A stretch of DNA of 64,000 nt from Selaginella moellendorffii (Eukaryota > Plantae > Lycopodiophyta), in the NCBI RefSeq assembly GCF_000143415.4, contig NW_003314284.1, positions 1,506,086-1,570,085 on the forward strand, in the 5' to 3' direction. Of this stretch, positions 2,656-56,250 are shown in pieces (the stretch's first letter is position 1; the number at the start of each line of letters is the position of its first letter). Below the pieces are notes generated by a model. That model saw nothing but the letters and a program-made list of their open reading frames with translations, was not told the DNA's origin and did not search any database. A program made the translations under genes and the position numbers.

Positions 2656-5056
2656 TTACGCTGTCACGGTTTGCTTCTTGCAATAGTTCTCCAGCCACTC
2701 CATGGTCATGCTCTTTGGCCTTTCAATTGGAAGACCAAGTGCGCGATCCCACACCAGCTGAAGGATACAAGCAGTCAATTGGAGAGCTTGGAAGCACAAT
2801 GCTAGTACCTGTGCGAGAACGCCTAAGGCCCGAGAGACGCCAAACAACACGGTGTAGTAGCTGCGAGAAGAAAAGTAAAGTGGTCAGAGCCTTTTCCTTT
2901 AATGAGAAAAAAAAGAGAGGAAAAAGAGGAAAAAACGTACTTCTCTTCAGTCAACCCGAAGTATTGTAGAAGTACTCCGCTATGCGCATCCACGTTAGGC
3001 CAAGGATTTTTCACCTGGAAGGGGGGCATTATGATTGCCGTGAATAGCGAGTATTACCTTTCCCGTTTCAAGAAGAATATCAGGCACAACTTCGTAAAGA
3101 TTGGATACCTGTGATCAGAGTGTGGCCAAATGAGAAAATAAAGCAACAATTGAAGGCTACCATTTTGAAGATCGGATCGTCGGGCAGATGCTTTAGTGCA
3201 AATTCGCGCTGGCAAGTGTACCTAGGGTCCGTTTTACGCAGCACTGCATGTCCATAGCCTGGAACCACCTGTACAGCAGAGTTAAGCAACTGATTTTTAA
3301 AATTTTTTTCATTCCAAACAAAGCTGACCTTTCCACTATTCAAAGTATCTTTTACGTATTTTGTCAGCTTTTCCTTGGAAGCATCAGCTCCGATCGCTTC
3401 AACGGCTTCATTAATCCAACGCAACACTTCCTGATTGAGTTTCAGACTTCAGGCCAGAACACACGATGATAAACTCAAACCTGGTTTGCAAGACCATGCA
3501 ATGGACCCGCCAAGCCATTCATTCCGGCCGCAAAAGAAAGGTACGGGTCCGATAGTGCACTCCCCACCTAGAGATAAATAGAGTCATCAAGAGTATTTTT
3601 GGAGAAGACCACAAAAACTTACCAGGCGCACGGTGTGTGCACTAACATTTCCTCCCTCGTGATCGCTGAAAGTCAATTACGCCATCCTCAGTTCACGGCA
3701 AAGGAAACTGTAGCAGACTAACCTATGAATAGTAAGATACAGGCGCATCAGCTCATGCATTTTGGGCTCCTTAAAACCCAGCATGTGAGCAAAGTTTGCT
3801 CCATAATCCAGCGACTTGTTTGACTCAATCAGCTTGCCTCCATGGTATGTTCTGCAGCGAAAACATTTAGCATCACTACAAGTTGCAAATTATGCAAACC
3901 TTTGGTAGATGTAGGACGCTAGGCCTGGCAACCTAGCAATCAAGTTCATCGAATCTTCGTACACTGGTTCCCAAAACCTAGACACACCGCTCAATTATCA
4001 GGAATATATATAACTACGACTACTCACTTTGATTTGTGAATTCCCTTCTCATACGCCTTCTGAAACTCGCTGTCGGTCTGTAGCACGAGCTCAGTAAGTG
4101 TTCTCGAACTACGTCAAACACTTACTTGCAAAGCCATAACTCCAGCAGTCAACTGTGTCATTGGATGCGCATTACTCGGAAGTGCATTCACAACGTCATA
4201 CACATGACCTGTATCAAACACATTTCTGTGAGACAAGCAAAAAAATTGTAATCAAACTTGCCCGGAATGTCAGAACGAGAAGCCCAGTCTTTCGTCAATG
4301 TCGCAGCTTGTTCCTTACTGGGAACCTGAAGGGAACAATGTATAAGAAAGTCAAAACATTTGAAAGCCTAATGCCTTACCTCACCAGTAACAAGCAGCCA
4401 AAACAGTCCTTCTGGTATCGGTTCACCGTCGGAAACGGCAGCTGGAAGCTTCTCTTGACACTCTGGAATGGACAAGCCCCGAAAACGAATACCCTGTTTG
4501 CCAAGGACGCTGAAACAGCAAAGAACAAATAAATCCTTGACTACCTCTTCAGGATCGAGCAGGGACGTCTCCCAAAGCATGCCTTTAATCCCTCGCATTC
4601 CACCAATGGCCTGAAACGAATAGAGAGATCATAGATATGACTAACTAGCTCAAACAAACGCATACCATATCGACTGTGGTTTGGCCGAGCGGAACTGATC
4701 CATGCTCCTTTTTCAGCTTTTTCAGTCGCTCCTATAGAGAAGACGATAGTGCTCATCTACCGCCTTCCAGAAAAGCTCAGTGACCTCACCTGTTCTCCCG
4801 GAATCAGTTCCACCAGCCGCGATCGAAGATCCTACAAGAATTGCCAGCACAAATCACACGCCAGATCCCGAAATATCGCACGGGCAAGCGCCTACCGTCG
4901 TCAGCAATCGCCGAAACCACCAATGCGGAGCAATCTCGCAACCAGCCTGCACGGATCAATCACAGGAGCTAAGACGAGGTCGAGAGATGCGACGACACAG
5001 ACCGAAATGCGGCGAAGCTTGGACGCCACACCGCGCGCTCTGCCGCCCATTGCCAT
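2656..5056 (-). CDS. CSY: Citrate synthase, mitochondrial type (multi-exon)
   Basis: Exons encode [76 protein letters not shown] and LFGVSRALG...IERPKS. Arg-rich presequence-like N-terminus. Confidence 0.95.
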
Positions 5057-5167
5057 CGCTCTTCCTCTGCCCCAACCCTAGCGCCTTCGTCTGACGCTTT
5101 TGATCTTTTTGATCTTGCAACGTGGCGCCGTACGAGCTAAACCCCAGCTCCCCTGTTTTTAGGGCAA

Positions 5168-7251
5168 ATGGGGGAGGAAGGGCCGCCGTGCTACCTCCCA
5201 GAGGTCGACGAGGAGGACGAGGTTTGTATAGGAGAGCGATGTTTCACTCGGCCGTACAGATTCTATGTACCTCCAGTTCACTACAAGCGCGTTCCATCGC
5301 GGGTGAGCTAGCTTAGATGTAATGCATACCCGCATTTTCATTCATTGGGACTAATTCCTCTTGCAGGAGTATAGATGGAAGCTGGGAGCGAAGATCAGCC
5401 CCGCGAATGGATTTCTTGTCAAGTTCCAGCGCGCTCTTGCGTTTCCAGATTGCTTGGGCTTGTGTGAGTTTCTTTTCCTCCTCTTTCAAATGGTTCTTAC
5501 TTTTAGTTTGTAATCCAGCCGACGATGCAAGATGGCGATGGCAGTGGTGTCCTCTCTCCCTTGTCTTGGGGATCAAAGTGACGAAAGAGGACTGGAAAAA
5601 AGAGGACTGGAGAATGGATTCCTCGCGCACATTTGCTTATGCGAAGATCAAGCCAATGTCACTGTTTTGCGGGAAGCTAGGTACTGCAGCTTTTATTCTC
5701 CTAGTGGTTTGATCTTTCACTTTTTCCATCGTTTAGTGATTGAAGGGTGTTGGGCTGTGCAGCCCTGCGTCCTGTCGTCGAGCTTTTTCCCGTGCCTGCG
5801 CTGAGCATAACGAGAACGTTTGATGCTGGTGGTGGCGAAGCGAAACTATGCGCAAGCGTAGAGGTTTTGGGCATGATTGTTTTGTGGTGTGCTAAGTAAG
5901 GTGTTCTAGTTCTCTGACAGGTTAATGGCTCACTTGGACCTCAATGGAGATTAAAGCTCGACTGGCAAGCTGCAAATCTGGTAAGCAGATATTTATATTT
6001 GGGGAAACCATTGCAACTTTTCTGCAGTTTAGAGTATTAGTTCAACAAGGAGAGGATGTTTTATCAATCCAGTACTCGAAGCGGATCAAAATCTCAAAGA
6101 CATGTCAAGCGGTGAGTTGGAAACTCTCGGCAGTGGCGATTTTCACTGGTCATAAGACTTGGTTTCCAGGTTGCTACTGGAGAATTAGATGTTCCATCAA
6201 ATGCGTTTTGTGGAAATTTGGCAACCAGCTTGCCGGCTCGACTAAAAATCGCTTCTATCAAACTGTCGCAAATCTTAAGCAAGCGGGTACTTCGACTTTA
6301 TCTTAAAAGTTTGTCTAGTGATTGTCTCTGTTTTGGCAGACAAAAAGGCACAAAGTACTACCTACGTCTACGTACCTCAAATCCTCGCGTGAAATCGGTA
6401 AGAGTGACCGAATCACAGTCGTTCCAGGTCATTGGATAGATCCTGGATATGAACCTGGTGCTCCTGGCGAGCGGGAATTCAACCTTGATGTAAGTTACGC
6501 TGGTTGTACTGAACTTCTAATGTTTTTTCTTTGTTCTCCAAGGTCGTCAATGTCTTGGAGCGACAACTTCGCCGAAATGGCTGGCAAGTTTTACGTCCTG
6601 ATCGCGACGCTCCAAACCTCTCCTGGGAGGAGTATTTGAATTGGGTGTCTAGACAGGTAGCATCAATTGTTGTAAGATCAATCGTGTTTACCGTTCGTGT
6701 AGAGTTTGAAGGGAACGCCAGTTCTAGAGATTCACGGACAGGTTCGTGTTCTGGTTTTGATGATATGATTTCTCATGTAATTTTCGTACTGCAGGGATCG
6801 AATGCTGATTATAGAGGCTTTGTGCTTGGAGTAATTGGCGACCCGGAAACACCTTTGGGTCGGGTATATCACTTCCCTGCTGCTTCTCGGCAGTATAAAC
6901 TCCTTGTTTTTCTCCAGGAACTTTCCAAGGACTTTGGAATTTTTGACATGGACTGGTCGGATCTTGCGGTGCCCTGTCGCGGCGGGATAATCCTCGAGAG
7001 CTTCAACTCGGACGAGGTAACCTGGAGAAATCATCTGAAGCTCACCATAGCTCACACTTTGTTTCGTTTGAGATCCAAAGGTTTTGGAAATGGCACCTTG
7101 GCATCGAGCTTGCGCTGTGAGGAGACTCGCCAACAGGATCATAACTTGCATCGAGCGAGCGAGCTACGCGAATCGAGGCGCTCGAGGGATGATCCACGAG
7201 ACCCGGACGGACGGCGGCGATGTGAGCACATTAGAATATCCGGAAATTTAA
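5168..7251 (+). CDS. Putative N-acetylmuramoyl-L-alanine amidase (Amidase_3-like C-terminal domain) with beta-rich N-terminal region
   Basis: Phase-0 exons 5921-5980, 6028-6111, 6170-6286, 6340-6489, 6543-6656, 6703-6741, 6795-6863, 6918-7016 and 7081-7251 splice in frame. They give ITVVPGH..PGAPGEREFNLDVVNVLERQLRRNGWQV..VLEIHGQ..GGIILESFN..RRLANRIITCI. Splicing of the 5' exons (5168-5863) is less certain. Confidence 0.7.
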
Positions 7252-7462
7252 AAACGAATAGTTTAGAGAAGCTCCAGCGCTAGAAAGATCGATCCATGAA
7301 TAACATATCCTTGACGAGAACAACACACACAAGATTTGTGGGTACGCCCCTCGAAAGCATGCCAAGATTGGGCGCCACGCCCTTTGGGCAGGTCATTCGC
7401 ATTGTCGTCCTCGCCCACTCCCCTAGCTCTTGAAATAGAGAGAAAATTGGCGCGCCATTGCG

Positions 7463-9432
7463 ATGAGAATCCTCCAATCCCGGCAGAAATCCACGATGCA
7501 AAGCTCCGCGCTGGTGCTGCTGCTGGCGCTGATGATCGCGCGAGGTAAGGAAAACAGAAGCGAGATTGGATGATCGATCGATCGATCGCCCCAATCTTTC
7601 GCGCAATTTTTTAAATGTTTTCTCTTGAATCTTCTTCTTCTTCCTCGCGCGCGCGCAGGGACGGGCGCCGACGAGACCTATCCCTACTCGTTCCTCCGCG
7701 ACGCCGCCGACTCCCCGGTGTACGAGCAGTACGACTACATCATAGTGGGCGGCGGCACCGCCGGCTGCCCTCTGGCGGCGACGCTCTCCCGCTACTTCCG
7801 CGTCCTCGTCCTGGAGCGCGGTCCCTCGCCCTATGGCAACGCCAACATCACGCGCATCGAGAACTTTGGGCGCAGCCTCAACGACACCGAGGGGCAATTC
7901 ACGCCCGCGCAGGCCTTCACGTCCACCGACGGCGTTCGCAACACTCGCCCGCGCGTCCTGGGCGGTGGTAGCTGCCTCAACGCTGGCTTCTACACGCGCG
8001 CCAGCCCCGACTACGTGCGCAGGGTTGGCTGGGATGCGCGCCTGGTTAACCAGTCGTATCCGTGGGTGGAGAGGGTGGTGGCGTTCGTGCCGCAGCTGGG
8101 AGCGTTCCAGAGCGCATTTAGGGCGGGGCTGCTGGAGACCGGGGTGACGCCGGACAATGGCGCCACTTTCGATCACATCTATGGGACCAAGACTGGGGGG
8201 TCGATCTTCGACCATCAGGGCAACCGCCACACCGCCGCCGACCTCCTCCGCTACGCCAGCGCCAGGAATATACTCGTGCTCCTCCGCGCCAGCGTCCAGA
8301 GGATCCTCTTCGACACCTCAGGTGAATTTCTCCTCTCTTCTCCACTTGTTGTCATCGACTTCTTTCTCTCTGTCCGATCGATTCGATTGATTCGATAACT
8401 CCTCCTCGATTCTCTGCGATTGGCGTGAGCCACCGAAGCCCGATCTCTCAGATTTTCTCGAATTTCTGGGATCCCCTGTTTCCTTATTTTACTATCTTTC
8501 TCTTCTCGGCCGGATCGTCGTGTGTGTAGGTTACCAGCCGCGCGCGATCGGGGTCCAATACCGCGATGCCAACAGCCGGATGCACATCGCGCGCCTCAAT
8601 TCCAATCGCCAGAGCCAGGTGATCCTGTCCGCGGGCGCCATGGGCAGCCCCCAGCTGCTGATGCTCAATGGCATCGGGCCGCGCGCGCACCTCGAGAGCA
8701 TGGGCATCCGCGTGCTCGTCAATCTCCCAGGCGTCGGCCAGGGCATGGCGGACAACCCCATGAACACCGTCTACCTCCTCTCGCCCGCGCCCGTGGAGAC
8801 GAACCTCATCCAGGTGGTCGGGATCACGCACTACGGCAGCTTCATCGAGGCGGGCAGCGGCGAGCTCGATGGATTGAGCGCGGGCGTGCTGCTCGAGAAG
8901 GTGATCGGCCCCAGATCGAGCGGCCAGATGACGCTCACCTCGCTCGACGCCGCGGACAATCCCCAGGTCACCTTCAATTACTTCCAGGACCCGGAAGATC
9001 TCCAGAGCTGCGTGGAAGGGATCAACCAGATCGAGGAGATCATCCTCTCCAGCTCCATGCGCCGCTTTCGCTACGACGCCCAAGCTCTTCCCTCGGGCGG
9101 GACGGTGGCATCGCCGGTCCGCGCGGATTCAACGCTCCGGTCGTCGGTCAATGTCACGCTGGCCAGCTTCTGCAGGTCGACCGTACAGACCATCTGGCAC
9201 TACCACGGTGGCTGCCAGGTGGGCAGAGTCGTGGACAGCGACTACCACGTGTTAGGCGTTGATGCGCTGCGCGTCATCGACGGCTCCACGTTTAACTTCT
9301 CGCCCGGTACGAACCCTCAAGCGACGGTCATGATGCTGGGAAGGTAAGTGAGATATTCGTTTTTTTCTTTGATGTGATTGGTGTTCCAGGTATATGGGAT
9401 TGAGGATTATTGCGGAGCGTATGCGCCGCTAG
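7463..9432 (+). CDS. GMC oxidoreductase, HOTHEAD/mandelonitrile lyase-like
   Basis: Signal peptide-like first exon; YDYIIVGGGTAGCPLAATLS FAD motif; RVLGGGSCLNAGFYTRA; TIWHYHGGC; PGTNPQATVMMLGRY. Start could be 7463 or 7496. Confidence 0.93.
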
Positions 9433-32307: not shown

Positions 32308-34236
32308 TTCCTTGTGTCTTTTTTCTAGGCCACTGCTCAGCTTGTTTTCACTGCAGGAGCTCCGTGATTCCCTTCAAACGAGCGCCTCTACATTAGCCTG
32401 CGTAAGTGTGCTAGCTTCTATTTTTCTATGGAGAAAGAAGCAAAAGGCCAATCCACTAACCTTGGCGTCTTTGTTCCGTGTCCTTCCGGATTTGATAACT
32501 GGATCGATTGACCACAGACGAGATTCTGGACACGTTGCAAGTATGAAAACAGCGCAGGACTTCCTTCTCTCTTGTTCTAGTCAATCACTTCCTCCACTTC
32601 AGTTTTGCAGTTCTTCCATCGTAGTACTCTCCTGCAATAAGCACACGAACAAAGCATCAACCAGTCCAGAATTTTCTTCGCACCGTGACACCAATCATCA
32701 AACACCTGAGTGATTCCACTCCACTCTCGCCGGGAAAAAAAGAAAAAAAAAGAGAGGAGAGAGATCCGTCCATCATCCATCCATGCCAGACTTAAAACGC
32801 CACAGGTAATATGCGCACTTTCGCCGTTATAATAATTTCTTTCGTCCTGGATTGATTCCCTCGCATATTCAGGCTTGCCAGATCTTTTCCTTTACATAGG
32901 CCAGCTACACGTGCAAGCGATCCGAATATTCAACGGTCAAACGCGGAACAAAATCTCCATCCCACGCACAGAACACGGCAACGGTCAAACTTCTCTTCCA
33001 TTGGTTGGTTTTGTTTTTCCATTTCTTTTTGTTTTTATAGGAAAAATTTTTTTTTTTCTTGGTTGCTTGCCTTTGTTCTTCTGGTTCTGGTCCACCACCA
33101 CCATCATTTCCAGGGACCAAAATGACAGTCACAACAACATGTCCCCCATTTTTTGGCTTTGTTTTTGAGCCAAACCCCTCTCCCTCCTTTTTTTGTGACT
33201 TGTGACCCCAACAACAAGGAGAGGGAGGGGTCCCCTTGTTGGCATTTGTAGTGGCCATACAGCTCAAGAAGCAAGGAAGTAAAAAAGAGAGGAAAGCAAA
33301 ACAATCGTTTTACAGAGTGTAACCTCAAAAATCTACTAGCTCCAATATGTCTTTTGTTTGCCTAGCTATCAATTTTTTCGCTGTGGCTGGACAGCCATCC
33401 CCTTCACACTTGTTACCAAGCAAGAAAGAAGCAAGCAGCAGCATTCCAGAGGGCTTTGACCTTTCACTGAGCTTGGACTGGGACCATCCTCTGGCAAAAT
33501 CACCACAAAAAATACATTGCCAGAGTGAGAAGCACACACACACACACACACACAGAAGTCTTGAGCCCACAAACACACAAATTTGCTGATGCCACTACTC
33601 CCACCCAGAAAAAAAAAGAAGAAAAAAAAAGAACATTACATGTGGCATGACAAAAAGATTAGGTGTGACACACACTTTCTGTTTCCTTCCCACAAATAAT
33701 CTCACACCAAGAAGAATCTCTCTCTGATTATTATTCAGCCATGCATCCATCACCAGGTAGGCCTAAGCTTGTTTTGTCTTCGGATTTCAGCTAATTGCAT
33801 TACAAGCGACAAAGACAATGCTGTATTTGCAGCTTCCAAAAAGATCTCTTGCTACTGTTTCTGCAGCTGCTGCGCTGGTGCTGCTGGCCTGTGTGCTGTG
33901 TGCTCTCTCTGCTGTCAAAAATATATTGACACAATATATACACCATGGTGTTGGAACATGGATAAAGAAGAAAATCTCAAGAACCTCACCCAAGACTAAA
34001 AGCTGGCCAACTAGTACGTAGTGTAGTTTGCGTAAAACCCCCAAAATCACAAAAACAGCACGGAAAAAACAACCCTCCTCCCTCCCTATAATCGCTTAAA
34101 ATGTACGGTGTGGGCACGTAGATAGTAAAAGTACCGGCATTGCATTGCGGTTCTCGGTCGGTCTCTTGAGCACTGGCGGCATACCGCGCGGTGTGCCGCT
34201 GGCCGTTAGCTAGAGCTGGGCGCGTACCGCCATCGC

Positions 34237-35610
34237 TTAGAACGCCACCACGTCCGTCCTGTCCAGCTCCGCCAGGCACGGGTCCTCCGCCCACCACCGC
34301 CGGAGCAGCTTGAGCAGCTCCACGGCCTTCCTCTTTGCCCGATCCGTGCAGTCGCTCTGGATGAGCAGCAGTAGCTGCGTGAGCACCCCGGCCTCGGCCG
34401 CCGCCAGCTGTACCTCCTCGCTCCCGCTGCATACCGCCAGTAGCGTCCCGGCGGCGCACTCGGCCGCCTGGAACGAGCTCCGGCACTGGATGGCCGCCAC
34501 CAGCGCCGGCACCGCCAGCGCGTGCTGCGCCACCACCTCCCGCCCCGCCCGCGTCCGGCACAGCAGCTCCAGCGCACCCAAGGTCCGGTCCGCGTCGCCG
34601 TGCTGTGCCGCCGGGAGGTGCTCCACCAGCGCCGCCGCGGCGCCGGCGGATACCGCCCGCTCGCTGTTGGATGCCGCGCTGCACAGGCACAGCGAGAAGA
34701 GCGCCTTGACGCCCGACTTGGGCGCGCGCGGCGACACAGCCGAGTGGTCGCCCCGGAGGAGATCCACGAGGCCCTCGAGCAGGCCGGGGATCTGGCCCAT
34801 GGCCAGCTTCGCCGCCTCGGGCGCGTCCGACGCGATCTTCTCCACCAGTACCGCCGCGTTGATGCGCGCGTCCATGCTCCGCCCGCGTCGCACGATCCGC
34901 GACACGGCGCCAAGCCGCCGCCGGCACTGCGCGATGGATCGCCGCTCGCTGTCCTTGAGCGGGAGGAGCACCAGCACCGCCAGCGACGACTCCTCCACGT
35001 CCAGGGAATCGCCAAGATGTTGGTCGTGATCTAGCGGCGCGCAGCACGACAAGGAATCGGGATCGAAGGAGCACGAGCACGACGAGGAGAGATTGTCGTC
35101 GTCGTCGTCGTCGCTGGAGGAAGAAGGGATCCTAAACATGGCACGGATAAGAGCCGAAACCGCATTGGCCTCCACCATCAGACCTCGGTTCTTATCGTTC
35201 TCCTTGGCCAGCGCGCGGAGGCTGCGCAGTGCCGGCAGTAAGAGCTGCAGCGCGGTACCGCCAGCGGTACCGCGCGTCACGTCCCGGACGAGCGCCGCGA
35301 CGCGCTGGGGGTCCGCGGGCTGCTTGGGCGTGGGGATGCGCTCGATGCCGCGCGAGCGATTGGCGACGCACCACTCCTGGATGAGGCGGCGCAGCGTGTG
35401 GTTTGGGATGAGCGTGAGATCGGTGAGGCGCTGCATCGTGGCCGGGCACGTCGCGTTGCCGTCGCTCACCCATTTCTCGATGCTGGAGCGGTCATACGTC
35501 TGGCCCGTGGCCACCGTCACCGGGTCGCGCATCAGCTCCAGCGATATCGGGCACCGGAAGTAGTGGGGCACTTGCAGATTTTGGACCTGCATCTTCTTGA
35601 GCCCCGGCAT
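34237..35610 (-). CDS. PUB: U-box/ARM E3 ubiquitin ligase (PUB25/26, CMPG-like class), intronless
   Basis: VPHYFRCPISLELMRDPVTVATGQTYDRSSIEKW..TCPATMQ..LIPNHTLRRLIQEWC; ARM repeats; C-terminal LLLLIQSDCTDRAKRKA. Confidence 0.95.
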   Translation of the reverse strand: MPGLKKMQVQNLQVPHYFRCPISLELMRDPVTVATGQTYDRSSIEKWVSDGNATCPATMQRLTDLTLIPNHTLRRLIQEWCVANRSRGIERIPTPKQPADPQRVAALVRDVTRGTAGGTALQLLLPALRSLRALAKENDKNRGLMVEANAVSALIRAMFRIPSSSSDDDDDDNLSSSCSCSFDPDSLSCCAPLDHDQHLGDSLDVEESSLAVLVLLPLKDSERRSIAQCRRRLGAVSRIVRRGRSMDARINAAVLVEKIASDAPEAAKLAMGQIPGLLEGLVDLLRGDHSAVSPRAPKSGVKALFSLCLCSAASNSERAVSAGAAAALVEHLPAAQHGDADRTLGALELLCRTRAGREVVAQHALAVPALVAAIQCRSSFQAAECAAGTLLAVCSGSEEVQLAAAEAGVLTQLLLLIQSDCTDRAKRKAVELLKLLRRWWAEDPCLAELDRTDVVAF

Positions 35611-36180
35611 CTTGCTCGCCAGCTTGATCGCTCGCTGGATCGATCTATCTCTCTCTCTCAATCTCTCTCGCTCGATTCCCTCCCCTCTCCCTCTCAATTC
35701 GACGCGATCAATCACAAGAGGCTCGTCTTTCTCCTGGCTGATCAATCACGCCCAAGAAGAGCCCATCTTGCTCGCGACAATCGATCGATCCCCGATCTCG
35801 ATTGATCAATCAGACCCAGAAGCCAAGATCCCCTACACTCTTGCCTTCCCCGCCCCAGCCCCGCCAAGAACCCTAAAATCGCCATCTCCAGAGCTTCATC
35901 GCGGCCGGCATTCTTCTCCTTCCTCCTTCCTTCTCTGCTTTAAACCCTTGCTAATTTCTTTTATCGTTTTTCTTCTTCTTCTCGATACACACATGGCCCT
36001 GTTTGTTATAAGTAGCCCTAGCTGCCCGGGAGCGCTGCCCGGCCTGCCCGCGCGGGTCCCCATTGGTCTCGCCGCTGCCACCGACCGACCGTGATGTTTT
36101 CCTCACTTTGACGGGAAACTTACACTACTTTTTTAACACGGGTGTACCACCTTTTTTACCTTTGCCCTAGACGTGTTGGT

Positions 36181-53865: not shown

Positions 53866-54176
53866 TGAGAGCTCCATTTGGAGTTGTGAATTTTTTGGAG
53901 CGGGAATAATTTGCTAGCCGTGGAAGTATATGATTACTGTGAGGTTTTAACAGTCAAGATGCTTTGTGGCTGAAAATTTGTCCATTCTCACTTCCATTAG
54001 TGTCCATTAGTCCATTAGTGTCATAATAAGAGATCATCAAAACAAAATGAATCATTAATAATCAAGTAATTTTAAATACATAAATATACTTTTATTTTAC
54101 TTCAGTTTTATTATTAAACTTTGTAAACAATATATAAATGAAGCAATGAATTAATATAGCAACCACTTTGTGATAG

Positions 54177-55915
54177 TGGTGGGTAGCCTAACAAAAACTT
54201 ATGCAAACCTGCAAAATATATATATGAAAAAAATACATGTATGTTTAATTGTTATAATATATTTATGTGACTTATGAAATAATATTTTAAACAAAACCTC
54301 TTTTTTTTTCACATGGGCATGCATTCATAGGTTAGCACCACATATACTATTTTTTGTGTTGCATAAATTTTAACTAGTAAGTTAGTAAATTAATTAACTA
54401 CACTAAACTCTTTTGGCTTTACATAAGTCATAATTGCAAGATTGATATATATATTAACCATAAAAGGTTTTTTACAAAATTTAGAGGATGAATTCTAATT
54501 CTAAAATCTATATATAACATATTTTTTATGGGGCAATTACATAATTATATTAATGGAGGATTTATGGAAAAAGTATTTTTGCGCCATGAATAATATCAAA
54601 AAATAAATATTTTTCGCTATCCCTAAGATCCTATATTTTTGCAATGGTGAATTATGAAGAAAGTTACAAAGTGATGATGTTATATTTTAGAACATTATTA
54701 ATGTGACAACATATAGTAAATTTTAGTGGGATAAAGGGCCTAACAAATTAACAAATTAATATACTAAAGGTGTGCATCATTTATACTTATGCAAAACTTT
54801 TAACTCTTCAATCATAGAAAAAATTTAAAATGAAAAACATATACATTACTGCATGTGTTAGAAATAAATATTCATAAATTTATTTATGTGCAACTATTTG
54901 TATTGCAATACTTTTTACTCACCATAACACAATCATTATATCTCAAACTAGAAAGTTAAACTTTTATTTTTAATAAAAAGTTATACCTAAGAAAGAAAGA
55001 TTCTAAGTTTTGGATTGATAGCATATCAAACCACCACAATGCCAAAAATTTATATATATATGATTATAAATGTAAGAAATTAATGAAGTTAATGTTTTAC
55101 CATAGTTACAACAAAATTCATTTGCTTACACAAAAACTATTATATTAAATGATTTAAAAAAATGTTTTGTCATTGCCTTTATACTCTAATTGATTATATT
55201 TGCCTTTGTGTCAATTGATCACTACTTATATTAAAGCTTTACACTAAGGCCCTACATTGCAAATAATGCACTTGTAAGAATGATTAAAATGTCATAATTA
55301 TATTAAAATGCACTATAATTTAAACACACTTCCAAGCCGCAAGAAATTAACCATAGTTACATAAAATAAAAAGAGAGAGATGATAAAATCAGAAGGTTAT
55401 AAATTTGAGTCAATGATAAAAAAATAAGATAAAAAAAACCATCACTACATTTATAATGATGTAGCATCAGTTTTATGTAGCAGTCTAAAGTGTCATATTT
55501 TATGATAAAATATTATACACACAATCACGTTACATACATAATATTTATATAATATGTACATAATATTTTTATATGTAACTAAATAAAATAAAATTGCATT
55601 TATACAAATATATTCATCTTTTTGCTCCACCATTATTTAACATCACTTTGTAATTTTTTCCACAATCCAGCATTATAAAGATATACGATACTAGAGATAG
55701 TGGAAGATATTCATTTTTTAGATATTGTTATAACATGTAAATATTCTCAATACTTTTAGTAATTAGAATAACTAGTTTTATCTTGTGAGTCATAGATGTG
55801 TGTTACAACAATTTAAATATATCATATATATATCACAAAACCTCATTATCTAATATGTATTTCTTTTTCATATATTTTGCAAACTTGCATAATTATTTTA
55901 CCAAGTTACCCACCC
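54177..55915. mobile_element. AT-rich foldback/MULE-like element with long nested imperfect inverted repeats
   Basis: 54177-54280 is reverse-complementary to about 55781-55915, and 54590-54678 to about 55641-55727. No coding capacity. Confidence 0.6.
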
Positions 55916-56250
55916 TAGATACACTTCCCCTCTTGGTACCTTCCCCCCAAAATTGTTATAACAAATTACTTGCTATAAGTTTTGTATTAATAAAAATATT
56001 TTTATTTGTCCCCTTTTTTTCTTTCTTTTCTTCTAAACATTAATAAATGAATCATAATATAATATTTATCAAATGCATTTTGCAATTTTTTATATTCATT
56101 TGATATGAACAACCATTGTGCTTCACTCAAAAAATTTCAAACTTCATACTTTGAAATTTAATTATATTAGTTAAAATTTAATAAAAATAAAATAAAACTC
56201 CTTTATTTTTAAACTGGTTAAATAAAATAAACCTGCAACTCCACAGTGTT

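Follow-up and report, generated by a model that had tools for sequence, protein, structure and literature searches.

A nuclear gene of Selaginella moellendorffii predicted to encode a divergent Amidase_3-fold enzyme joined to an N-terminal membrane barrel, a candidate for opening the plastid wall

Mosses have a layer of peptidoglycan in their chloroplasts, and the genes for making one are retained in many other non-flowering plants and algae; when peptidoglycan synthesis is blocked in mosses, giant undivided chloroplasts result. How this plastid wall is opened is understood only in part; the enzymes implicated are a LytM peptidase (DipM), a lytic transglycosylase, and a carboxypeptidase, and the known plastid peptidoglycan hydrolases have been proposed or shown to be necessary for chloroplast division. 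Utsunomiya and colleagues are said to have described, in 2021, the MltB and VanY homologues of Physcomitrium as such hydrolases. Miyagishima et al. (2014) recovered Ami homologues in cyanobacteria, and photosynthetic eukaryotes gave DipM homologues only (PMC4015805); in MacLeod et al. (2023), hydrolases go unmentioned. We found no amidase reported for plastids in the searchable literature. Here, we analyze a gene in a 64,000-nt stretch of the spikemoss Selaginella moellendorffii (contig NW_003314284.1, forward-strand positions 1,506,086 to 1,570,085; hereafter the window, to which all coordinates of the gene refer). An earlier note, made from the sequence alone, had taken the gene for a peptidoglycan amidase of the Amidase_3 type, probably a cyanobacterium-derived septal enzyme of the plastid. 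On balance, though with limited confidence, we read its product as a two-domain protein in which a plastid outer-envelope barrel would carry a zinc amidase acting on plastid peptidoglycan. A divergent Amidase_3-fold enzyme with an N-terminal membrane barrel, in green algae and non-flowering plants, appears to be a new combination: no description of this protein was found in the searchable literature, most subscription journals lying outside that coverage.

The reading frame runs from ATG to TAA on the plus strand through 13 exons and encodes 465 amino acids (Table 1). All 12 introns are GT-AG introns of 46 to 82 nt. Introns 2 and 3 are in phase 1, and the last nine exons are in phase 0, matching the nine GT-AG phase-0 exons that had been spliced into one frame in the earlier note. 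The exon model was first assembled by eye and then tested against transcript contigs from four public runs belonging to four different studies. Eleven of the 12 junctions appear in these contigs as joints with GT..AG ends (5302/5367, 5463/5519, 5680/5763, 5980/6028, 6111/6170, 6286/6340, 6489/6543, 6656/6703, 6741/6795, 6863/6918, and 7016/7081). Ten of them are present in all four runs and one, the coding junction of intron 3 (5680/5763), in one of the four; for the remaining junction, 5863/5921, the evidence consists of short overhangs only, in three runs. The 39-nt exon 6703-6741, which encodes the E-I-H motif, has both flanking joints in all four runs, so that it is included in transcripts, and its frame differs from that of the 250-amino-acid open reading frame (ORF) at 6531-7283, as the earlier note had claimed. 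The RNA places the start of exon 6 at 6028, adding 15 residues and closing an alignment gap relative to the homologues. An alternative acceptor AG for this exon, at 6073, was ruled out by the contigs.

The spliced product aligns over its full length with about 30 plant and algal proteins at 27 to 52% identity, an end-to-end homology far beyond chance; this is a genuine nuclear gene of the plant, rich in introns and transcribed. Bacterial contamination, against which the introns had been cited from the start, was rejected on account of the 12 introns, the plant genes on either side, and the spliced RNA. The gene model is already in public annotation, with neither a function nor a Pfam domain: a profile search retrieved it as the RefSeq entry "uncharacterized protein LOC9658903 isoform X1" of Selaginella moellendorffii (P0234, 465 amino acids), which is 97% identical to the window product and differs from it at 12 of 465 residues, none of them in a conserved column. 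The RNA contigs carry the variant bases 5238 G>A, 5242 T>C, and 5263 C>A. Variants at these positions, at 5851, at 6220, and at other sites correspond to the differences between the window and P0234 proteins (e.g., R24Q and F32L), indicating that both alleles or haplotypes are transcribed. We read the window as a second haplotype of the LOC9658903 locus; the published Selaginella assembly presumably contains both haplotypes.

Intron 3 (5681-5762) has a second acceptor. In three of the four runs, contigs join 5680 to 5737, not to 5763, and the resulting 26 extra nucleotides cause a frameshift that reaches a TGA about 22 codons on, as worked out from the sequence; the contigs give no proportions of the two splice forms. 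Translation of the extension in the downstream frame yields ..VLGCAALRP.., and two transcript-derived homologues of other species, P0004 and P0011, start with ..GCAAL(Q/R)P.., a resemblance suggesting that the 5737 acceptor is conserved. Regulated unproductive splicing or a shorter isoform could account for this form.

The C-terminal domain is predicted to have the fold of the Amidase_3 (MurNAc-LAA) superfamily, extending over about amino acids 270 to 445 (6391-7188). Two AlphaFold2 models were used, one of the C-terminal domain alone (predicted local distance difference test score, pLDDT, 76) and one of the full-length protein (pLDDT 82). For both, the top matches were 14 Amidase_3 structures, at Z 12.2 to 14.0 with 147 to 172 residues aligned and a root mean square deviation (rmsd) of 3.1 to 5.6: CwlD, C. 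difficile 4rn7, Ami1, AmiP, CwlV, LytH, Cwp6, AmiC, a phage endolysin domain, 3czx, 3ne8, AmiB, PlyPSA, and CD27L. The best was CwlD 7rag_B (Z 14.0 and 13.4, 157 residues aligned, rmsd 3.0 to 3.3), and both enzymes that had been suggested for such a comparison, AmiC and CwlV, are in the set. The next family, poly-gamma-glutamate hydrolase (PghP), scored Z 9.0, and all else fell below Z 8. Foldseek agrees on Amidase_3 (probability 1.00, E down to 1.9e-5).

The link at the sequence level is more distant. Pfam gave no match on single exons or on the 250-amino-acid ORF. For P0234, Amidase_3 (PF01520) was the sole Pfam match, at 15.6 bits (E 0.017, hidden Markov model [HMM] positions 1-86) against a gathering cut-off of 27 bits; the moss orthologue (15.3 bits) and one bacterial relative, P0092 (23 bits, HMM positions 1-173), were likewise sub-threshold. 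A 26-domain family profile that included distant bacterial members, searched against 177,635 PDB sequences, had Amidase_3 chains as all nine of its best matches, headed by 3czx (E 1.9e-4), CD27L (4.2e-4), and LytH (6e-4), a link that emerged only after the bacterial members had been added to the plant profile. In the HMMER alignments, the GH, GE, and E-x-H motifs of the family fall on GH, RE/NE, and E-x-H of 3czx and CD27L, and GG-x-I-x-E403 falls on GGIVFE of 3czx and AVLIES of CD27L. No variation occurs at H283, E296, E349, H351, or E403 among 31 full-length proteins, and these residues make up five of the eight invariant columns in the 26 domains from plants, algae, and bacteria. From this register, H283, E296, and H351 are predicted to be zinc ligands in canonical positions and E403 to be the catalytic Glu. 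The four codons that had been assigned to these residues in the earlier note (His 6430-6432, Glu 6469-6471, His 6733-6735, and Glu 6996-6998) are exact, and the conservation expected of them among orthologues was found. The family forms a divergent branch within the Amidase_3 superfamily, its catalytic set intact, and it lies outside PF01520 by that family's own threshold; of the original assignment to Amidase_3, the fold and the residue register thus stood and Pfam membership did not. The sub-threshold Pfam score and the frequency of the frame-breaking splice form in the contigs might suggest a catalytically dead, wall-binding pseudo-enzyme, or else a functionless contaminant or recent transfer. 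We regard this as highly improbable, given that the four catalytic residues stay unchanged all the way from Mesostigma to gymnosperms in a strongly conserved family, and that the gene has 12 spliceosomal introns, plant genes on either side, spliced RNA in four studies, and two transcribed alleles; the contamination part is largely refuted.

The earlier note had overlooked the N-terminal half of the protein, where the full-length model has 12 long strands between residues 49 and 250 (DSSP). This half is predicted to be a 12-stranded transmembrane beta-barrel, extending over about amino acids 45 to 252 (5367-6286). Its structural matches were KdgM (Z 12.7, 156 residues aligned, rmsd 3.3), FapF (12.3), a COG4313 channel (12.2), NalP (11.8), a designed 12-strand transmembrane barrel (11.8), and the chloroplast outer-envelope channel OEP21 (11.0), with NanC, Tsx, OmpG, and OMPLA ranking lower. 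The hydropathy difference between alternate residues of the strands was 3.11, compared with 1.65 ± 0.35 in within-strand shuffles, none of 2,000 of which reached the observed value; the two strand faces have mean hydropathies of 1.94 and -1.17, and the charged residues divide 23 to 5 between one face and the other. A search of the N-terminal half for AMIN or another Pfam domain gave no match. The first 60 amino acids contain 10 acidic residues (D/E) and 3 Ser/Thr, with a conserved Cys motif, C-x-G-x-x-C-F, modeled as a short beta-hairpin at amino acids 18 to 27, and this acidic N-terminus does not look like a stromal transit peptide. Most plastid outer-envelope barrels, Toc75 being an exception, are inserted without a transit peptide. 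The predicted barrel thus shifts the likely location of the protein from "imported into the plastid" to "anchored in an outer membrane."

Since the location is one that we infer, and barrel matches at Z 10 to 12 show a shared arrangement of strands and not where the protein resides, the barrel might instead be soluble or lie in another membrane, such as the mitochondrial outer membrane, and the amidase would then never meet plastid peptidoglycan. This seems improbable to us: every barrel match is transmembrane, the chloroplast OEP21 among them, the strands show a strong dyad amphipathicity, and the species range tracks the plastid wall, not mitochondria.

The kinship of the family with bacterial wall hydrolases comes from the proteins that the plant profile recovers at E 1e-5 to 1e-16, P0060, P0084, P0070, P0092, P0095, P0101, P0107, and P0118. 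The amidase domain is joined to Glucosaminidase in P0060, P0084, and P0070, to LysM repeats in P0095, to M23 and a DPBB lytic transglycosylase in P0101, to M23 in P0107, and to M23 and a phage tail lysozyme in P0118, company that supports a peptidoglycan substrate for the subfamily. P0060, P0084, and P0092 share a common gene order, FtsK/SpoIIIE ATPase, two small genes, M23 peptidase, and amidase, a module that looks like a conjugative or phage-like wall-breaching unit. It was seen on three unrelated metagenome contigs (L005 5001-6200, L007 8001-9107, and L009 8001-9266), where several small genes precede the ATPase, and its amidase protein occurs with or without Glucosaminidase. A bacterial fusion of barrel and amidase was not seen in this analysis.

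For the cyanobacterial derivation that had been proposed, the evidence is divided. The nearest ESM Atlas clusters are a Pfam-less cyanobacterial "amidase family" (features 0.93 and 0.92; shape TM 0.77 to 0.80), and an NblA gene lies near P0092 on contig L007, so that at least one host is probably a cyanobacterium; for a tRNA ligase on the same contig, the nearest cluster is cyanobacterial, tied with proteobacterial ones. A word-indexed search with a bacterial-first alignment returned metagenome proteins only, and the taxonomy of the bacterial relatives therefore comes from one NblA neighbor and the Atlas labels. On the other side, a 36-domain tree provides no supported donor, its bacterial rows sitting on very long branches joined at unsupported forks, and two pattern scans of 185,579 bacterial and archaeal species genomes (WEEYLNW / PGH[WF]IDPG, and a second set taken from the bacterial relatives) yielded no confirmed relative.

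The septal role that had been proposed along with it was not borne out, as the protein has no AMIN domain and no AmiA/B/C architecture, and orthology with septal AmiC is unsupported without the AMIN domain. AmiB/C-type amidases also have a regulatory insertion. That the protein nevertheless descends vertically from a cyanobacterial septal amidase, as an AmiC-type orthologue that is imported into the plastid and works at the division site, is in our judgment unlikely. The Pfam-less Atlas clusters, the NblA contig of P0092, and fold matches to Nostoc AmiC2 and E. coli AmiA/B/C are consistent with such an origin. However, the N-terminal half is a predicted beta-barrel; the catalytic domain spans about 167 residues compared with about 232 in AmiB in the same structural alignments, leaving little room for an insertion; the N-terminus is acidic and not transit-peptide-like; the bacterial relatives belong to FtsK/SpoIIIE-M23-amidase modules of a kind typical for mobile elements rather than to division clusters; the tree supplied no supported donor, and the scans of the 185,579 genomes turned up no relative; and motif searches found no Ami homologue in photosynthetic eukaryotes (Miyagishima et al., PMC4015805).

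An exhaustive HMM search of 1.84 billion representatives gave only 111 relatives. Many of the matches are unnamed; the named members are from streptophyte algae (Mesostigma, Chlorokybus, and the Zygnematophyceae Netrium, Closterium, Spirogloea, and Mesotaenium), liverworts (Marchantia, Riccia, and Calypogeia), mosses (Physcomitrium and Sphagnum), lycophytes (Selaginella and Diphasiastrum), ferns (Ceratopteris and Adiantum), gymnosperms (Ginkgo and Taxus), and prasinophyte algae (Pycnococcus, Pseudoscourfieldia, Picocystis, and Chloropicon). Further members are marine metagenome proteins, some with eukaryote-type gene neighbors. None of the named matches is from an angiosperm, a core chlorophyte, a red alga, or a glaucophyte, despite the predominance of angiosperm proteomes in the databases. 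A complete set of ten Mur-pathway genes has been reported for several prasinophytes as well as for Selaginella, Marchantia, and Physcomitrium (PMC12681378), and a plastid wall is considered likely in Chloropicon (PMC10784329). As a match between range and plastid-wall gene sets, this is suggestive and imperfect: the named members come from groups reported to keep genes for plastid peptidoglycan, and two angiosperms considered below depart from the pattern.

Two kinds of marine metagenome members differ in their N-terminal part. A 230-amino-acid member from marine and estuarine metagenomes (P0123/P0045; L001 1162-1854, also L002 and L003) has no barrel half and adjoins a calponin-homology (CH_2/CAMSAP_CH) gene, a neighbor indicating that it is probably from a picoeukaryote. 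In P0018, P0022, and P0035 (1,100 to 1,181 amino acids; L004 1335-4637), which are abundant, the amidase domain is C-terminal and is preceded by about 900 amino acids with no Pfam domain; some database sources mislabel members of this cluster "chemotaxis protein histidine kinase CheA."

In a 12-stranded barrel both termini are on one side, which in bacterial outer-membrane proteins is the periplasm and would correspond to the intermembrane space in plastids. In the reading that we favor, the barrel would be inserted into the outer envelope membrane of the plastid with no cleavable transit peptide, and the amidase domain, joined to its last strand, would hang in the intermembrane space beside the plastid peptidoglycan layer. 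There it would cut stem peptides off the glycan strands at the bond between N-acetylmuramic acid (MurNAc) and L-Ala, allowing wall turnover or splitting during plastid growth and division, with H283, E296, and H351 holding the zinc and E403 serving as the catalytic base.

Several observations weigh against this reading. Asparagus and Citrus, for which the full peptidoglycan toolkit is reported (PMC10784329), yielded no family member, and none was seen from Klebsormidium or hornworts among the named matches. The orientation in the plastid envelope is not guaranteed, and the amidase could face the cytosol, or the barrel could be in another membrane. The match to PF01520 is sub-threshold only; a profile of the plant domain only gave nothing but noise against the PDB sequences; and hhalign of the plant alignment with E. 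coli AmiB alone was insignificant (probability 2.7%), and placed the AmiB Glu on E298 rather than E296. Finally, the 5737 splice form is unable to encode the barrel-amidase protein.

The substrate, too, is one that we infer, and the domain might be an amidase-fold enzyme with another job, acting on a different amide substrate or on the peptidoglycan of invading or ingested bacteria. Compatible with this are the lower-Z fold neighbors, poly-gamma-glutamate hydrolase (Z 9.0) and N-formylglutamate amidohydrolase (Z 7.0), and the imperfect co-occurrence with the peptidoglycan toolkit (Asparagus and Citrus, PMC10784329). We give this explanation little weight, as Amidase_3 enzymes lie 3 to 5 Z units above every other family, the sequence-level matches are Amidase_3 only, and the bacterial relatives all carry other wall-hydrolase or wall-binding domains. 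Moreover, a membrane-barrel anchor is unsuited to a secreted defense enzyme, and loss in angiosperms and core chlorophytes better fits a plastid-wall role than general defense.

A bolder extension of the barrel-anchored plastid amidase, which we put forward tentatively and think rather doubtful, is that the architecture is the green lineage's own, with an outer-envelope barrel and an amidase tying wall cleavage to the outer membrane. The protein would then be the missing wall-splitting amidase of plastid division in algae and non-flowering plants, which angiosperms and core chlorophytes would have lost together with the classical plastid wall. Overall, the family is a candidate wall-opening amidase, conserved from Mesostigma to gymnosperms and overlooked by standard domain annotation, and its barrel half suggests a route for holding a wall hydrolase at the outer envelope without a transit peptide. 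The candidate is directly testable through the orthologues in the transformable species Physcomitrium patens (P0236) and Marchantia polymorpha (P0221, MPTK1_4g21500).

Table 1. Positions of the coding region, its exons, and the alternative exon 4 extension within the window
Feature	Position	Strand	Basis
Whole coding region, ATG to TAA, 465 amino acids	5168..7251	+	Sequence and RNA
Exon 1, amino acids 1-45, acidic N-terminus, Cys motif C-x-G-x-x-C-F	5168..5302	+	Joint 5302/5367 in four runs
Exon 2, amino acids 46-77 plus one base; first predicted barrel strands	5367..5463	+	RNA, model
Exon 3, family-invariant W83 and W85 (RWRWQW)	5519..5680	+	RNA, alignment
26-nt extension from alternative acceptor 5737, frameshift into stop	5737..5762	+	RNA contigs
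Exon 4, conserved coding form (LALRPVVELFPVPAL)	5763..5863	+	Joint in one run; overhangs for 5863/5921
Exon 5	5921..5980	+	RNA
Exon 6	6028..6111	+	RNA, joint 5980/6028 in four runs
Exon 7, last predicted barrel strands	6170..6286	+	RNA, model
Exon 8, linker and amidase start; PGH (H283, 6430-6432), GERE (E296, 6469-6471)	6340..6489	+	RNA, alignment
Exon 9, helix 1, strand 2, WEEYLNWV helix	6543..6656	+	RNA, model
Exon 10, 39-nt micro-exon, E349-I-H351 (His codon 6733-6735)	6703..6741	+	RNA, alignment
Exon 11	6795..6863	+	RNA
Exon 12, GG-I-I-L-E403 (Glu codon 6996-6998), predicted catalytic Glu	6918..7016	+	RNA, alignment
Exon 13, final long amidase helix, disordered tail, stop codon	7081..7251	+	RNA, model

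A second copy of the gene was looked for within the 64-kb window and not found. Upstream, highly covered transcript contigs end at 5002-5112 and run over a junction at 4947-5002 with CT..AC ends, i.e., GT..AG on the minus strand, indicating a minus-strand neighbor that seems to start head to head with the amidase gene, about 60 to 170 nt from its ATG. An exon of this probable neighbor (4368-4598) is, we assume, citrate synthase-like; Pfam on a 75-amino-acid piece of it gave no match. Downstream, at 7463-8400 (+), lies an intron-containing GMC-oxidoreductase gene with a signal-peptide-like first exon around 7463-7548 and GMC_oxred_N and NAD_binding_8 matches on the ORF 7625-8395, an ordinary plant neighbor that confirms the eukaryotic context. 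In composition, the window has strong outliers at 54001-56000 (GC 0.24) and 34001-36000 (GC 0.64), compared with about 0.48 elsewhere.

Among described systems, the predicted catalytic domain most resembles the compact Amidase_3 enzymes, CwlD (7rag), CwlV (1jwq), the CD27L endolysin (3qay), LytH (7tj4), Ami1/Rv3717 (7agl, 4lq6), and AmiP (7b3n). It shares their fold over about 150 to 157 residues (Z 12 to 14, rmsd about 3 Å) and their order of elements, namely strand-GH, a Glu at the start of helix 1, strand-E-x-H, strand-GG-x-x-x-E, and a long final helix. In contrast, identity to them is 14 to 21%, the spikemoss protein falls below the PF01520 cut-off, and its family has motifs of its own (PGHWIDPG, RPDRDAP, WEEYLNW, and EIHGQG); the gene is eukaryotic, nuclear, and intron-rich, and the predicted barrel replaces the SH3, SPOR, LysM, AMIN, or PG_binding modules. 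With the septal amidases AmiA, AmiB, and AmiC of E. coli and AmiC2 of Nostoc, it shares the catalytic fold (Z about 12) and, in the task proposed for it, the removal of stem peptides that lets envelope layers separate. Unlike them, the spikemoss protein has no AMIN domain or signal peptide, and its catalytic domain is much shorter than that of AmiB.

The predicted N-terminal half has the 12 antiparallel amphipathic strands of outer-membrane barrels such as KdgM/NanC, NalP and other autotransporters, the intimin type, and OEP21, which it matches at Z 10 to 12.7 over about 145 to 180 residues. The spikemoss barrel precedes the functional domain, an arrangement shared with inverse autotransporters; it has no sequence similarity to any of these barrels and no Pfam family. 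The bacterial relatives (P0060 and the others) have the same motifs and the same five invariant residues, although they are prokaryotic, have no barrel, and combine the amidase domain with Glucosaminidase, LysM, M23, DPBB, or phage tail lysozyme domains. Among plastid wall enzymes, the parallels are DipM (LytM/M23) of Cyanophora and Physcomitrium (PMC4015805) and the MltB and VanY homologues of Physcomitrium, likewise nuclear, bacterial-type, and limited to plastid-peptidoglycan lineages. From DipM and the other plastid hydrolases, the spikemoss protein would differ in its predicted target bond, the MurNAc-L-Ala amide, in its fold, and in its membrane-barrel anchor.

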